DNA of 63,122 bases, filler included, from Hyphochytrium catenoides (taxonomy: Eukaryota; Protista; Hyphochytriomycota): NCBI GenBank assembly GCA_900088475.1. It is 4 parts of 4 records of this genome, joined end to end, with 100 filler letters (N's around TTAATTAATTAA, not from the genome) between each part and the next. Parts side by side here need not be neighbours in the genome. Positions count along the whole stretch, not along the records: positions 1 to 26,722 come from FLMG01001994.1; 3 more parts are not named here. One strand, 5' to 3'. Positions within the stretch are counted from its first letter, which is position 1; each line of letters begins with the position of its first letter. A model generated the notes under the pieces. It made no database searches. It had not been told where the DNA came from and saw only the letters and a program-made list of their open reading frames with translations. The position numbers were made by a program, and so were the translations under genes. Positions 11,525 through 26,722 of this stretch are shown here, in pieces.

Positions 11525-12481
11525 TTAGGGCATGGTCGAGGCCTTGCACAGCGCCGAGATCCACTGCGTCCTCTCCATCTCATGCCGCGTAGAAGTCCGC
11601 AGTACTGAGCCATCAGCGAGGTGGATAATGATGCCATTTCGTTTAGTTGGACACCGTGATACAGCCCGTACGATCCCACGCTGTAGAGGCAGACGCTGGG
11701 GCCTATCGTCCTGATAGCAGCTGATCAATCCATTCGTTAGGACAAAGTACTGCTTTCTCCATACCGAGAAAGAGTGCTTCCCCTTCTGCATGTACATCCA
11801 GCCAGATTGTAGAATGAACTCGGATGTACATTGGCGTCGGCGGTGAAGTTCATCTTTCAACGATGCGATGCGCGCATCTGCCGCGTTACGAAGGTTTTTA
11901 AACCACGCATCCCGCTCTTCCGCAGAATCTGCCTCCACGAGCAGCTCCCTGCCGTCCAAGCCTTTGATGTTGATGCCATTTTGCACCGTGGGGGAGAGAC
12001 TAACAGAGAATACGACAAGATGGCCCCGAAGTGTAGATCTTCGAAGTCGTGTGTCGTCCGATGTAAAGTAGGCGAGGGAGCTCTGGTTGAGAACAAAGTA
12101 TCGTCTCTTCCAAGATCTTACTCTTGAACCCTGTTTCCTAAGCCATCCCGCATACTCCACTCTGCCAATCCCCTCATGCGAGCAGCTGCAGGAGCCAGGA
12201 CTGGCTGATCTATTGAACCGATAATGTTCCTCACATTGAGCCGCGGAGGATGAATGTTCATTCTGCCGCTGTTTGTTTGCTATGTCTTCTTCAAGGGAGT
12301 CCACATAGAGATAGCTTTGGGGCACCACAATACTCTTCTCGAAGTCTCTGTCTTCAATGAAGGAACAGGTAGAGAACTGATCATCAGGTACAGTCAGACT
12401 CCGACCCACGAACTGCCAGAAGCTGCTTCCAAAGCTCTGAAGGCCCTGGAAGGATCCTCGAGGTGCAACGTCCTCCAGCAT
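11525..12481 (-). CDS. Tandem pleckstrin-homology (PH) domain protein, single exon
   Basis: PH1 reads EYAGWLRKQGSRVRSWKRRYFVL...ERDAWFKNL. PH2 reads QSGWMYMQKGKHSFSVWRKQYFVL...ERTQWISAL. First ATG is at 12481. Confidence 0.9.
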   Translation of the reverse strand: MLEDVAPRGSFQGLQSFGSSFWQFVGRSLTVPDDQFSTCSFIEDRDFEKSIVVPQSYLYVDSLEEDIANKQRQNEHSSSAAQCEEHYRFNRSASPGSCSCSHEGIGRVEYAGWLRKQGSRVRSWKRRYFVLNQSSLAYFTSDDTRLRRSTLRGHLVVFSVSLSPTVQNGINIKGLDGRELLVEADSAEERDAWFKNLRNAADARIASLKDELHRRRQCTSEFILQSGWMYMQKGKHSFSVWRKQYFVLTNGLISCYQDDRPQRLPLQRGIVRAVSRCPTKRNGIIIHLADGSVLRTSTRHEMERTQWISALCKASTMP

Positions 12482-12819
12482 TACTCTCCGATCCACAAAC
12501 TCTCAGGCTTCAGCCACCGAAGCCGACTCCAACGCCCCTTGCTCCAAGTGTCTTGCTAAATAATCCCAACTTTCTTATCGGTTGCCCTTGCTAGCTAGGA
12601 GAAGATGCTAGTTACGGAATCTCTTAGCTTCTTTAGAGCAACAGTACGGTCCTTTAACTTTTCGGACGGAAAAACGATTTGAGCTTTAGAGGGAAGAAAG
12701 ATCTCTGTCTCGCTCAGTCTCACAAGCTCTGACTCAACCTACCCGCTGCTCTGCAGCNNNNNNNNNNNNNNNNNNNNNNNNNNNNNNNNNNNNNNNNNNN
12801 NNNNNNNNNNNNNNNNNNN

Positions 12820-16342: not shown

Positions 16343-19300
16343 TCACTCTTCCTTAGCCTCCTCGTCCTCATCTATTCTTTCAACGCCCGGCTTTGGCGGT
16401 GGCCTTGGAGTTTCCTCGGTCCTCTCACCTGCGCCTTGCTGGGTGGTGCTGCGGTTGGCGGGGATCCAGCTGCAAGGGGATAAAGGACAACCGTTAGAAG
16501 AGCAAGAATAACATACTGTCTCGGCTCGTACGTAGGGCCCTTGGATGCCCATAAAGCGCAGCCTCAGCACCAATAACGGGGGAAGTTAGCTTGTGATAAG
16601 TGTAGAGAAAGGATTAAGAAGAGTAGAAGACCGGCAAGTCCGCGTGAATGTAGGAGAGTTAAGGGCAGACAAATAACAAAAGAGATGCAGTCGGGACGGT
16701 AATCTGAAAAGGAGAGGAGATGTGACCTACCGCCTTCTTCGACAAGATGATCGTCCCAGCGGTATTTCAATGATTCGCCCCAGTCTCAGTCCCCTTCTCT
16801 CACTGCCTGATCTATTGCTATCCTGAGTGCTTCCTCTTTCCTCTCTACCTCGCCTGCGCAGAGCACTGAAAGTGCCATCGTATATCCATCCGTTCTCGTC
16901 ACTTCCTTCTAGGGAAGTGTCCACTACCCAGCCCTCGAGAGGGAACTCGAAGGCACTAACGTCAAAGTCCCATCCATGGGAGAAGCGTAGCGGGTCTGTC
17001 GGGAACATGTGTCCAGGATAGGACGAGCCGTACCCTAGCAGTGGACTTCTCCTACGTAGCACAACAGTTCAGATTCAGCACCAAGCAAGGATAAGTCGAG
17101 GTGTGCAGAAGGCCACCAAGCCCTCATCTCCTTAGAAAGAGTAGCCGGTGTGAGAAAGAAGAGGCTGAAGTAGGAAAAGGCAGACGATAAGTTGGACAAC
17201 AGCGGCTTGCCCTTGTCTCTGAGTTGGTACCTTTCGTTCTCCCAGATCTCTCTATTTTCCAGCGGCAACGAGTCTATAAACTGAGCAAATTTTCTATCTC
17301 TCTTCCTTCGCGCTGCGGGGATCATCAACTCGACGGGCATCTGTATCACCTTCTTGAGCAGAGCTTGGCCTTCCTCAGCCACAGAAAAGGCGAATCCTAC
17401 CAATCACGTTAGACAGTCGAAGCGCAGACGAATAAAGGGGAGGGTGGAGGGACGAGAGTGCAGCCTTAGGATCGTATTGACGGACTCGAAGCCCGCCTCA
17501 TCCATCTCTTCGCTCTCGGACCTTTTCAACCGCACCTTCTTCCCCGTTCCTTGCACTACCGCCTCTGAATGCTGTACTAAATGCGGTTGTCCGAGCCCTC
17601 ATCGTTGTCGTTAGGTTCTCGCCCTCATTCTTCTATCCCTAACCTCTTTGGTACAGCTTCTTACATCGACTCTATCCTAGAGTACTCTTCTCGATCCACC
17701 TACTTCCTCCACTACTTCCTCCTCCTACTCAAACGTCCAGTAATTGTTGCCTTCTCGCTTCCGTTACCTGTATGTCGCCTTCGTCCCTCTTGCTGGCTTG
17801 CTGTTTCCTCTGCCTTCTCAAGGTCCGGCTCGCCAGCTTCCTCTTCCTCCCTGAGAAGTGACAGAAAAGGTTAGTACCACCATAAAAGGGCACTTCAAAG
17901 CCCTGCTCTGAGGACTTCTCCCGCAGAGCTCCAGGACATAAATAACAAAGACCAGGACGAAAGCGAGGGCGGCTTCTTCAGTCCCAAATGAAAAGGGTGA
18001 AAGGCACTTTAAGTAACTCTGATTGTTGTGAGGTGAGACCACGAGGAAGAGAGGAGTCACGCTCACCTGCCAGCAACAAAGAAAGTTGTCTGTTCCAAAG
18101 CTGGGTTCCAATCCAGAGCAGGACCTTCTATATTATGCACATGGGCTTCTCGCAAGAGATGGTAGTACTCGGGGTAGAACTGCGGCCGAGATGAAAGCCG
18201 GAACAGTTAGGAAAGACACATGGCGGGAAGAACAGAGGGACGCGCCGGACAGTGGTGGTGTCAGCTGTGCTACTTTCTTGAAGAGAGGAAGAATGAACAG
18301 ACAACAGCAGATTCTGAACTTGAAATCGCAGAACAAAGCATGGCAAGGACTCATAAGCATCACATCCATTCCCCGTCCATATTGTTAACTCCTTGGTCTC
18401 TGCTATGCTGTTCCGCCCTTGCAAGCTATTCCCACCGTACCTCATACTTCCAGCCCTTCCAAAAGATCTCCCTAGCCATGGCTAGGACGCAGGTGACGAA
18501 CACAAGCACCCAGAAGTTGGGGATCGAGTACTCGTAGGGAAACGCCCAGTCCATTATGGCAGGGATCTCAAGCACGTTCCAGATGAGCAAAGAGGCGAAA
18601 TAGACGATAATAGAGAGAAAGACAGAGCCAAGAAAGAGGATATCAAAGGTCGCGGTGTTCAGGACAAGCTTGAGGTGAGATACTATCATCATCGCCGTCC
18701 TGAGTGACAGAAGAAAGGAATCAGTCTTGGGATGGAGCATAACGGTTAATGGACAGCGAAGAGGAGGCAATCCTTGCTCCCCAGAGAGTGAGAAGACCAT
18801 GAACTTCTAAAGTAAGCCCCTAGAAAAGAAGGAGAGTTGCCGGGACAACGCGTTCTCCTTACCAAGAGACGGCCCCACATCTGTAGATGCTATAGAACAT
18901 CCCATTCTTGTCCACTCCTCCATAGAACCAGAGAGGGATAAGAGCGCAGATGGTTCCCTGGAAGAAAGCCTCCAAGATCCTTTTAAAGGGAAGTAAAGAA
19001 ACATAACGGCAGGCCCAGCAGGTGAGAGGCCAGGGATAGCAGGTCGAAGGTGGACAGTTCATCATCATAAAGCGACGGGCGATGAAAGTAACCCAAGAAG
19101 TGACCTCTTACCACTGCCAGAAGATCCTCCTTCCGAAGAGCTCATTCTTCCAGCCCGTGCGGTATAGAGCAGGATACCGTGCGGCCATTCTCTCTGGGAC
19201 AGACTGGTCCAGGATGGAGACTACGACGATCGGCACGGCTGTGTATACTATATTATACCTACGAAGGAGAGAAAGCATTCCCTGGTTAAGAATCTAGGTT

Positions 19301-22300: not shown

Positions 22301-25300
22301 CGTTGTGGCATACCGCAAGATGAAGCAAGAACCTCTCAATTTTCTGTGCATGCTCTTTGCCCCTTGCTCCCTGCATACCAAGAACCAGCATTGATGCTTC
22401 TTAGCCTGTTCTCTGATGTGCCTTCCACATACATTCCTAGCAAACCGCATCTCTCTCCGATCCTGTTGCCGTTCTGACTGTTCGCGACATTCTGCGCTAC
22501 TGCTACACCTCTTCTCTGCGTCCCAAGGACATTCCCTTGCGATGCCTTTCGTCTCTTTACTCCTAATTCAACCAAATGCTGGAAAGCTTTCCTTCATTGG
22601 AGACGAGAATGGGTCGTACCTGTCTGTCTTTGGCCAGCTCCCCTGTCGGGTCCACAAAGTGCACGTTGGACGGCTGTTCAACCAGCATATTATCCGCTAT
22701 AACATCTCTTCCAGAGAGCTGGTCGTTAAGGTAAAATAATGTTAAGAGACATCAAACCGTGCAGGAATGGAGAAGGCTACCATCAAGACCAAAGGAGCAT
22801 AATCTTCGTCAATGACAGGGGTGCGAAAGCTGAATGAGTAGAGGAGCAGAACAGACACGTTCGAAAGCAACTAGGAGACGAAGTACAGGCACAGGGCAGA
22901 CCTAGCCCAGTGGACTAGAGATGGAAGAGGAGATGGAAGGAATGCCTCTCACCTCCAAACCAGCCCTTTTCAAGGCCACTCGTCCAATCTCTGTGGTGCC
23001 CTTACCATAAGCAACACCGTTGATGCTGCACTTTCTGAAGTCCATCACATTGGCAGTCAGTGTGCCTGTCTTGTCAGAGAAAATGAACGATATCTGGCCG
23101 CACAGATCGTTCAGGTCTGGATTTCGAGCCAATGCAGGTGTATCGGTAGGTTCATAGTACATCTTGATGTCCTTGTTGATGAACCACGCCTGCCAGGTCT
23201 TAGTGATGGCAAGAGTGACATAAAGAGTAATAGGTATGATAGAAGAGGTCAAGCCCCAGAAGTAGAAAGTGTAGATAAGAAAGCCTGCAAAGTTGTTATA
23301 GAACGGGGTTGGACTTCCGCTCTCTTGTAGGAGAAGATATGTGTGCTCGTCGATGTTGACGCCAATCCAGACAGAACAGAGCAGGCCGCCCGCCAGACAG
23401 AGTACGACAAGGATGATGACGAGATATAACATGGCGCTGTTGACGACCTCGGCGATCTGTCCATACTTGTGAGGGTTCGGCTTGGAGCTCTGCATAATCT
23501 TCGTATCAGGACCTAGCAGCACAAGTGAAAGGAGGAACGAAAGAGGAACAGAAAGTAGGTTTAGGGGGAAGCCTCCTGCTGGTCGTGGCCAATTGCTTTT
23601 CTCTCTTCGAGCCCTTCTCTGTCTAATCTTGTCTTCATATTCTCTCTGGCTATCTGGCCTTGCCTTTTGCTTCCTACTAGGGCTTGAGTCTTCTCTCTGC
23701 TATTTCTTACTCCATCCTCTCAGGGCTTCCTCTAACCGATTCTCCCACGTTTTGCCTTTCATCTCCTCGGAATCGTTGGGCACATGCAGGACCTAAGGTG
23801 CCGCTCGTTTGCTCGCGCTCTGGGCCCCAACCCACCTGTGTTCAAAACTAGGCCGTAAATGTGGTCCACGTTCCGCAGCGTTGTTCCCCTTAGAAGCACG
23901 TTTTTCCTGTCGATGCTTAGCTCTCTCGCCCCATTTTCATCCACCCATTTCCCTCTAAAGCTGTTCGTGTTATGGTTAGGCCCTTCGCATTCCACGAGCC
24001 CCCTGGCCTCCCTGACATCCTTAGGACTACTGACAGGGGAAGACGAGAGAGGCATGACTTCTCTAATTTTAAGGTTTGTCTCTCCATCTAAGGACTTTGT
24101 CTCCACGAAGCAAATGCCCTGAGGGGGCTCGTCTTCCTTCTCGGAAACGCCAACCAGCAGAAGGTCAGCCGGAATGGTCTCCCGATTCTTCACCTGATGA
24201 AACAGAGCCAACGCGGTAGTTTGGTTGGAGACAGGGTCAGGTCGGTAAGAACACTAGCAACACAGGCCCACACCGAGACCAGGATAGTGAAGAGCCTTGA
24301 AGACAGACGCTGCAGAGTTAAGCTCTAGGACCGTCAAGGAAAGAGAGAGCTAGCGACAGACATAAGAGAGAGCAGCAATTGAATGTTCTCAGTGACATGA
24401 ATGACCCTCCTACCGAGCATCTACATAGAGGCATCAGCAGCAAAAAGTACTACGAATGAACATGATAGGCGGGCAATGATGCAGCTGCGTACCATGAGTA
24501 TATCTCCCACTACCACCTCGCTCCAGGTCGTATGCACGAAGCTCTCTGTCTGCTCGTCATAGCGCAGAGTAGGCGCAGAGTTCGCCTTCTTGTCAGCTTT
24601 ATAGCGCTTATGGTCCGCCACACCTTCAAAGAAACCATCCAGCGCGAGCACAAAGGCAAGAGAGAGCCACATAAAGGGGATGCCTCCCGTAGGAGAGATA
24701 GCAGGTATAAGCTGACCGACACCGACGAGAAAGAAGTAAGCATTAGCGGTCTGTCTGAAGCGAGAAACGAGAAAGAGAGGAACGAAGTTCCATGAGGTGT
24801 ACTTTGTCGTCGACACTCCGTTTCCTACGTATTCATGCTTCGCGTTCTCTTCCCGATTGTGCAGATAAACCTTCCGGGGAAGGGAAGAGTCGGGGGGAGA
24901 GGAAGGGACGGCGGTAGGAGTGGTCGGGGGCTCATGAGGTGGATACCAAGGATCCGGCGTGTTACTGGCGATGACTTCACTCTGAGGCGCGTAGGGAGGG
25001 AAGAGGTATTCCATGATCTGTTCAAAAAGAACAAGAGGGGGAGGCAAGAGAGAGATGAAGGAGAGACAAGAGAGGGAAGTCTTAGCTCGGTAGTTAGGTC
25101 AAGGGTAGCGACATCATCCGAGTGAAACGGCTGAAGAGCGAAGAGAAGGTGCTGCAGAAGCTGACTAGGGGCCAGTGGCCGCCGGCGAAAAGGTCAACAA
25201 CCTCTATGTTCACGCCATAACGTAAGACCACAGGTAAAGCGAGAGGTGTCGCGGAAAGGGTAGCGCGAGGGAGAGAGAAAGAGAAAGAGAGAGAGAAAGA

Positions 25301-26084: not shown

Positions 26085-26722
26085 GATAATAACACTGGAT
26101 GGTGGACAGAAGAGAGAAAAGGATTGGCTTCCAGTCAGCCTCAGAACACGTAGGCTTTCTCCCTTCTTTCTCTTCTCCTGGGCAGAGACAGCTCCGCCGT
26201 CTTCAGCAATGGACCTGCTGCTAGACTCTTTCCTGATGAGCTCCTCGCAGATGTTCAAGCTCCTCTCTGCGGGCAGCCCGGTCAATGCCAAGACACCGAG
26301 ACTCAACGATGAGCAACGGCCCGAGAGAAGTGGCGATAATGGTACCGGTCGGTGGCCGCCGTCTTGCCTGCAACTGTTCTACCGCGTTCGTAAAAGAGAG
26401 AGAGAAGAGAGTTGGGGAGAGGGAGAGCAGAGGGAAAGGAGCAAGAGAGTGTGTCTGTAACAAGACGGCAGAGGCAGCGGCATCATCCTTGAAGTGGCAA
26501 AAGAGGAGAGGGGAGGGAAACAGGAGGAAGATGATAGAAGAGCGAATAGTTAGGAAGGAAGCAGCCTCCTCTCCCTTGCTCTTTATCTTTTAGAGGCCTT
26601 CTTTCTCTCTCCTCCTCTTGGTCATCAGTCATCACCTCTGTAGAACTATAAGCAGGACCTACGTTGGCTCTCTCTCTCTCTCTCTCTCTCCCTCTCTCTC
26701 TCTCTCCTTTCTTTCTCTCTCT

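Follow-up and report, generated by a model that had tools for sequence, protein, structure and literature searches.

Gene model of the flippase and its tail

The sequence analysed here, in the following called the window, is a stretch of 63,122 nucleotides (nt) from the genome of Hyphochytrium catenoides, and all coordinates count along its whole length. On the minus strand, from ~25014 to 16343, lies one gene of 19 exons that encodes a class-1 (ATP8A/Drs2/ATP8B-like) P4-ATPase, a lipid flippase, with a length of ~1,427 residues. A tail with a GFAFS motif and a DysF domain is contributed by the last five exons. We regard this overall architecture, P4-ATPase plus GFAFS tail plus DysF domain, as almost certain. 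The features of the gene are as follows:

Core exons 1-5, 25014-24493, 24193-23836, 23512-22953, 22718-22620, and 22370-22190, minus strand: three-guide spliced alignment
Core exons 6-10, 21967-21804, 21529-21426, 20960-20814, 20682-20559, and 20352-20071, minus strand: three-guide spliced alignment
Core exons 11-14, 19931-19522, 19258-19112, 18979-18863, and 18699-18441, minus strand: three-guide spliced alignment
Exon 15, 18067-18179, minus strand: juxtamembrane tail past the tenth transmembrane helix; AG/GT borders, phase 0 with 18441, found by all three guides
Exon 16, 17768-17850, minus strand: 83 nt, acidic linker ending in RRRHT; AG/GT borders, open frame
Exon 17, 17231-17396, minus strand: 166 nt; GFAFS, 47-residue linker, and first DysF strand EIWENE/R; matched exactly with guide P0047
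GFAFS motif, 17383-17396, minus strand: the first base of its Gly codon is 17768, in exon 16
Exon 18, 16731-17051, minus strand: DysF core (EGWVVD), basic insertion, CRRRR
Exon 19, 16343-16469, minus strand: CAG acceptor; W of RRRRW, last DysF strand WIP, Pro/Glu-rich C-terminus, TGA at 16345-16343
DysF domain, 16460-17250, minus strand: model residues ~1270-1390, split by the introns 17230-17052 and 16730-16470

The core borders were obtained by homology-guided protein-to-genome spliced alignment with three oomycete-type guide proteins, which gave concordant results for those core exons that are well conserved; for the N-terminus (ATG at 25014) and a number of inner core borders the positions are approximate. 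In the resulting 19-exon chain all introns are of the GT-AG type and there is no internal stop. The spliced product counts 1,427 residues and carries DGET at position 210, DKTGT at 440, TGD at 758, and GDGAND at 889, followed in the tail by GFAFS at 1224, ENER at 1276, GWIY at 1333, and RRRRW at 1383. The identification as a P4-ATPase, which had been made in an initial annotation from the sequence alone, was confirmed by Pfam, whereby PhoLip_ATPase_N scored 76 bits on the window exons (cut-off 29, E 1.9e-21) and PhoLip_ATPase_C matched three collinear exons with 80.8, 47.5, and 34.4 bits (cut-off 28.3), the last of these matches (18698-18441) covering profile positions 159-245 of 251. Searches by tblastn with three related flippases yielded collinear minus-strand matches from ~24876 to 16865, and the solved structures closest to two of the core exons are ATP8A1 (6k7g), then ATP8B1 and Drs2, members of the class for which autoinhibition by (G/A)(Y/F)AFS has been documented (PMC13642993). 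A strict hydropathy scan of the model returned six peaks, the hallmark of P4-ATPases being ten transmembrane helices; the window exons are collinear with the homologues across the entire membrane domain. ATP-driven lipid transport, for which P4-ATPases usually have a CDC50 subunit, is predicted for the protein.

The exon with the last transmembrane helix ends at the donor WKYE/GTACGG at 18441 and continues in phase 0 into 18179. An AG precedes all five tail exons, a GT follows the first four of them, and exon 19 closes with TGA; spliced together, they give 810 nt in frame, which translate to 269 amino acids plus the stop. The five-exon tail with GT-AG introns of matching phase, as initially annotated, was thereby recovered together with exactly the peptide that had been quoted for it. 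With each of the three guides, the same positions were independently obtained for the 18441 donor, for exon 18179-18067, and for the junction 17231/17051, whereas the 17396 acceptor was given by one guide and the 17768 donor and 16469 acceptor by another. At the junction 17231/17051, ENER is followed by five residues and GYGS with a spacing identical to that in intron-free oomycete genes, and the junction 16731/16469 completes the conserved RRRxW (RRRR/W). Exon 15 leaves in phase 2 and exon 17 requires phase 1, so that direct splicing from exon 15 to exon 17 would cause a frameshift. Exon 16 is needed in the model because its 83 nt restore the frame between the two. If the intron after 18441 is retained (18429-18441, minus strand), a stop is reached four codons on (KYEVRWE and stop), and the product would be a tail-less pump that lacks GFAFS and DysF.

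The GFAFS motif and the first DysF strand (EIWENE/R) sit in the single exon 17396-17231, and the conclusion drawn earlier from this arrangement, namely that both belong to one polypeptide, holds. GFAFS lies ~77 residues downstream of the last hydrophobic segment, in the predicted cytosolic tail. In Drs2 and ATP8B1, (G/A)(Y/F)AFS is a conserved tail motif that fills the ATP pocket of the N domain (PMC13642993). No PDB sequence was matched by the GFAFS exon, and thus the assignment of the motif as a Drs2/ATP8A-type, putatively autoinhibitory tail motif is based on motif, position, and conservation.

The DysF domain

The module ENxR...PTD...GWxY...RRRRW had been proposed to be a DysF domain, and four comparisons agree with this. 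A search seeded with P0044, a metagenomic relative, reached green-algal VASt-DysF proteins (P0050-P0054) that pass the Pfam cut-off, and an hhalign comparison of the flippase tails (window sequence first) with these Pfam-validated algal DysF domains gave 99.6 % at an E of 8.8e-24. By BLASTP, window exon 18 matched the DysF domain of P0050 with an E of 1e-7. When the family profile of the flippase tails was compared to PDB sequences, the best match was 8p5p, TECPR1's N-terminal DysF domain, which was aligned end to end (E 6.6e-4). The fourth comparison is structural. [quoted passage not shown] The first 27 structural matches of the same model in Swiss-Prot comprise TECPR1, Pex30, Pex23, Pex31, Pex32, Mug65, Spo73, ferlins, and a phospholipase D of Phytophthora infestans, as well as Pex28 and Pex29 at low probability. 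In the P. infestans phospholipase D (Q5BMR2), it is residues 1372-1500, one domain-sized stretch, that match the DysF model. Language-model features of window exon 18 point to Peroxin/Ferlin clusters as well.

In the Pfam model Pex24p (PF06398), the DysF region makes up the C-terminal part; window exon 18 alone was matched by this model at 11.6 bits (E 0.14, profile positions 302-358). Seven of 21 relatives were matched too, the best with an E of 2.4e-4 and 20.7 bits, and all matches land on the DysF part of the profile, at about positions 244-358.

TECPR1 has a Trp/Arg stacking ladder of W116, W118, W122, and W138 with R159-R167, of which the window sequence keeps, in the alignment, the equivalents of W122 (EGWVVD) and W138 (GWIY) as well as the run RRRR. 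Between GWIYDGTF and CRRRRW the window domain contains an insertion of ~43 residues, 11 of them Arg, which takes the place of the TECPR1 loop K152-W154. The arginine of ENxR and an LL pair are nearly invariant in the flippase family, whereby the window reads MF at the LL position. By sequence comparison, the module is a true but shortened and divergent DysF homologue.

Relatives with the same tail and the surrounding sequence

An exhaustive search with exon 17051-16731 found P0005, a P4-ATPase of 1,775 residues with the same tail; P0003, an Ig-repeat protein from the first search with exon 18, was discarded as a spurious match. With the P0005 tail as query, ~40 flippases from Pythium, Globisporangium, Phytophthora, Peronospora, Bremia, Plasmopara, Albugo, Lagenidium, and Saprolegnia were obtained, and further ones with the same tail occur in Aphanomyces and Achlya; overall, more than 40 oomycete flippases share it. 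All oomycete-type homologues that reach the tail contain GFAF, followed by ENxR, GWxY, and VRRRxW. The distance from GFAF to ENxR, which is 52 residues in the window, amounts to 43-53 residues in 40 of 43 homologues. In the Phytophthora ramorum orthologue the whole protein is encoded by one uninterrupted open reading frame (ORF; L003 1384-6525), and the metagenomic relatives P0044 and P0042 are likewise single ORFs.

A distant relative of the window's organism is represented by L001, a 963-bp contig; here the same tail is interrupted by introns of ~55-75 nt, whose four positions and phases are those of the window. Its GFAFS exon measures 166 nt and is thus as long as window exon 17, an analogous acidic exon of 77-80 nt has the phases of window exon 16, and a stretch of 11 residues of exon 15 is conserved. 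Across the intron that corresponds to 16731/16469 of the window, L001 reads CRRRR/WIPQ, and a stop follows soon after WIP. The proteins of L001 and the window are ~41-44 % identical, and the DNA shows no similarity outside the coding potential. The intact frame and the same introns despite this DNA divergence show that the frame and intron positions of the tail were kept across a long divergence. Judged from these comparisons, the fusion is real and old, and it is standard in one oomycete flippase family (several orders) and present in the distant relative L001.

At the fifth residue of the motif, Asp (39) or Glu (4) is found in all 43 oomycete-type homologues (P0005-P0049; GFAFD/GFAFE), and Ser in the window (17383-17396) and L001 (258-272), as in Drs2. 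The acidic residue could act as a phosphorylation mimic. P0046, a protein of 1,406 residues from the Joint Genome Institute, contains a DysF domain of the tail type at ~1088-1197 and no Pfam-recognisable flippase or other domain. A full-length annotated orthologue of the window gene was found neither in the representative library nor in word searches, which were seeded from oomycete-type tails and not from the spliced window protein, and a metagenome scan with a single protein yielded no relatives.

A search of the full-text literature for DysF in combination with flippase or P4-ATPase terms returned nothing relevant, and the literature on Toxoplasma and Phytophthora capsici flippases, on P4-ATPase-cyclase chimeras, and on oomycete gene fusions makes no mention of a P4-ATPase-DysF protein. 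The precomputed Pfam annotation of the oomycete homologues does not contain PF06398. The architecture thus sits in public databases, yet is apparently undescribed in the literature searched. The initial annotation knew of no characterised flippase of this kind, which agrees with the literature searched; the architecture is not unique to this genome, the fusion being standard in the oomycete family.

The window is intron-rich, with a G+C content of ~50 % and many CT/GA microsatellites. Besides the flippase gene, the following features were recorded:

2723-4882, plus strand: open frame of 719 codons, Ser/Glu-rich, without a match in Pfam; either a low-complexity protein specific to the lineage or non-coding sequence would be possible
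8466-9128, minus strand: ORF piece that forms one exon of an adjacent gene with several exons and matches the first part (profile positions 1-101) of the eIF3 subunit L / Paf67 domain PF10255 with an E of 1.7e-32
11528-12496, minus strand: open frame of 323 codons with two pleckstrin homology domains (PF00169, E 1.5e-23); no homologues at E <= 0.001 in a word-based search of 5.8 billion proteins
12758-12819: run of N, a 62-base assembly gap
883-1073, 1351-1639, 9989-10208, and 26668-26722: (CT)n/(GA)n microsatellites of up to 146 copies, which create spurious SLSL and ERER reading frames

Possible role of the DysF domain and comparison with known systems

The release of P4-ATPases from autoinhibition is a matter of debate, in which phosphatidylinositol 4-phosphate (PI4P), guanine nucleotide exchange factors for Arf (Arf-GEFs), phosphorylation, and electrostatic switches are considered (PMC13642993). 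In the known cases, the main inhibitory determinant is the stretch downstream of the (G/A)(Y/F)AFS motif and not the motif itself; release is thought to occur via PI4P, Gea2/Arl1, or phosphorylation, polybasic tails may be electrostatic switches, and the tails are described as largely disordered (PMC13642993). [quoted passage not shown] By analogy with TECPR1, the DysF domain of the flippase would lie on the cytosolic face and bind to the membrane or to a lipid there. GFAFS would plug the ATP pocket of the N domain, as in Drs2 and ATP8B1, and the conserved linker of ~47 residues would occupy the place of the main autoinhibitory stretch of these proteins. If the DysF domain engages a lipid of the cytosolic leaflet, the tail would be held at the membrane and GFAFS together with the linker would be drawn off the N and A domains, so that membrane contact of DysF and docking of the GFAFS-linker segment, which lies 47 residues upstream, would be in competition. 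Only where the membrane has a given composition would flipping then be started or maintained, and the same binding could also confine where the pump resides. The basic insertion suggests that the ligand might be an anionic lipid. A coupling of this kind, of autoinhibition or targeting to a built-in lipid sensor, had been put forward in the initial annotation. As a whole, the explanation of a class-1 flippase with a GFAFS tail and a DysF domain that would bind membrane or lipid appears quite probable to us. Its specific element, the lipid-gated relief of autoinhibition, is a tentative proposal with somewhat more speaking against it than for it. It is rather doubtful, though conceivable by the same analogy, that the DysF domain serves as a sensor of leaflet composition acting on the flippase's own brake, in which case activity would be set by the very asymmetry that the pump creates. 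To our knowledge, such a self-contained feedback loop of a flippase on its own lipid asymmetry is not known for any P4-ATPase.

Several observations weigh against this explanation or parts of it. At the level of the gene model, the support for exon 16 and for the N-terminus is weak, whereby exon 16, which is without cross-phylum homology, is less well supported than the other four tail exons. The sole run covering the region (X1, typed "RNA?") contained no junction-spanning RNA; its one contig of 170 nt, at 16833-17002, lies wholly inside exon 18. At the level of the domain, the gathering score of PF06398 (26.8), which we took as a diagnostic threshold and not as a structural definition, was reached by no member tested, neither the window sequence nor any of the 21 relatives, so that the Pfam check proposed in the initial annotation turned out in favour of PhoLip_ATPase_C but not of Pex24p/DysF. 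The proposed structure model gave a similarly divided result, in that the relative P0042 matches the DysF fold, in which a loop wraps around a long pair of antiparallel strands, whereas window exon 18, modelled alone and hence with both terminal strands missing, reached a pLDDT of only 53. The WxW segment (W116/W118) of the Trp/Arg ladder is deleted throughout the flippase family. W77, D143, and K152-W154, by which TECPR1 binds sphingomyelin, are not conserved in the window; together with the deletion of WxW this means that the ligand specificity cannot be transferred. Finally, most human DysF domains do not show binding to damaged membranes, and therefore lipid binding is not a given for each DysF domain (PMC10476172).

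It might be that the fusion is real but that the DysF domain is an address label only, which targets or tethers the pump to a membrane or contact site and has no effect on autoinhibition. The structural neighbours Pex30, Pex23, Pex31, Pex32, Spo73, and Mug65 fit such a role, and DysF-bearing proteins of the Pex30 family act at contact sites of the endoplasmic reticulum. Moreover, TECPR1 uses its DysF domain for recruitment (PMC10476172), and P4-ATPase tails contribute to localisation (PMC13642993). However, the tightly kept distance between GFAF and DysF and the conserved linker suggest joint action of the two, which is still compatible with pure targeting. We consider targeting alone unlikely, but it deserves to be taken seriously.

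It could also be that DysF does not bind lipid but serves to dock a regulatory protein, in the manner of Gea2/Arl1 on Drs2 tails. That Drs2 is activated by tail-binding proteins (PMC13642993), that binding to damaged membranes was absent from most of the human DysF domains tested (PMC10476172), and that the lipid-binding Trp residues of TECPR1 are not conserved would agree with protein docking, whereas contact with a membrane would fit the basic loop and the tip residues R and LL, which are conserved, and no interaction of a DysF domain with a protein is documented in the literature examined. This makes docking an improbable explanation in our view.

Very improbable is the possibility that the DysF exons lie outside the main flippase mRNA, be it through an alternative 3' end, as a separate downstream gene, or as decaying exons. 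The lack of RNA across the junctions and the tail-less product that read-through past 18441 makes formally possible would be in line with it. Yet the GFAFS exon runs directly into DysF, the frame is intact over 19 exons, L001 keeps intron positions and frame, and oomycetes encode the same order in single ORFs. On these four grounds a separate downstream gene was rejected. A chance match of short motifs with an unrelated fold, for which the subthreshold PF06398 scores could be cited, is hardly credible and was rejected in view of the hhalign result, the end-to-end 8p5p profile match, and the top 27 Swiss-Prot structural neighbours, which are either DysF-bearing families or matched over the same domain-sized stretch.

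A natural P4-ATPase in which the putatively inhibitory tail is closed by a folded domain of the lipid-binding type would provide a simple test system for the release from autoinhibition, and the poorly understood DysF fold gains a new functional context beside a lipid transporter. In case the leaflet-sensor idea is true, DysF would obtain a defined biochemical role that can be read out via ATPase activity. Since the fusion is kept across several oomycete orders and is absent from the described animal, fungal, and plant flippases, it marks a feature by which membrane homeostasis is specific to the lineage. The oomycetes that carry it include major crop pathogens.

Among known systems, Drs2p, ATP8A1, and ATP8B1 are the nearest with respect to the core, having the same catalytic motifs, and the window protein has the exact GFAFS past the tenth transmembrane helix. 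Their tails, however, are described as ending without a folded domain (PMC13642993), whereas the window protein has DysF 47 residues after the motif, and beyond GFAFS its tail has no detectable similarity to the solved flippase tails. With respect to the tail, the DysF domain of TECPR1 (8P5P) is the top profile and structural match, with 32-34 % identity to the domain of the relative, and ENQR, LLxxD, GWxY..F, and VRRRxW are common to both. In contrast to TECPR1, the flippase domain lacks HWEWES (W116, W118), W77 is replaced by Tyr, Phe, or Arg in the flippase family, and a variable basic or acidic insertion stands in place of K152-K153-W154. The host proteins differ too, TECPR1 being an autophagy E3 adaptor and the window protein a membrane pump. 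The Pex30/Pex23 peroxins, Spo73, Mug65, and the ferlins share the same fold in the structural search and the same PF06398 region (~244-358), but they are farther from the window domain than TECPR1, and ferlin DysF domains are nested and longer. We know of no DysF domain of these proteins that is joined to a transporter.

In other proteins DysF or a DysF-like domain is joined to another lipid-handling module, a pattern into which the flippase-DysF protein fits. Among Pfam-validated DysF domains, those of the algal VASt-DysF proteins come nearest to the flippase tail in sequence, but their partner is a lipid-transfer module instead of a flippase and they keep the full Trp-rich middle segment. 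In the phospholipase D Q5BMR2 a DysF-like domain, a structural neighbour only, is likewise combined with a lipid-handling module, the partner here being a lipase and not a flippase. Fusions that start from the flippase side are represented by the P4-ATPase-guanylate cyclase chimeras (P4GC) of alveolates, oomycetes, and bicosoecids (PMC13466520). Like the window protein, P4GC consist of a P4A-ATPase with an extra C-terminal module and also occur in oomycetes, but their cyclase comes with a membrane domain of its own and in many cases the flippase part is degenerate (PMC13466520), whereas the window protein has intact flippase motifs and a small, soluble extra module.

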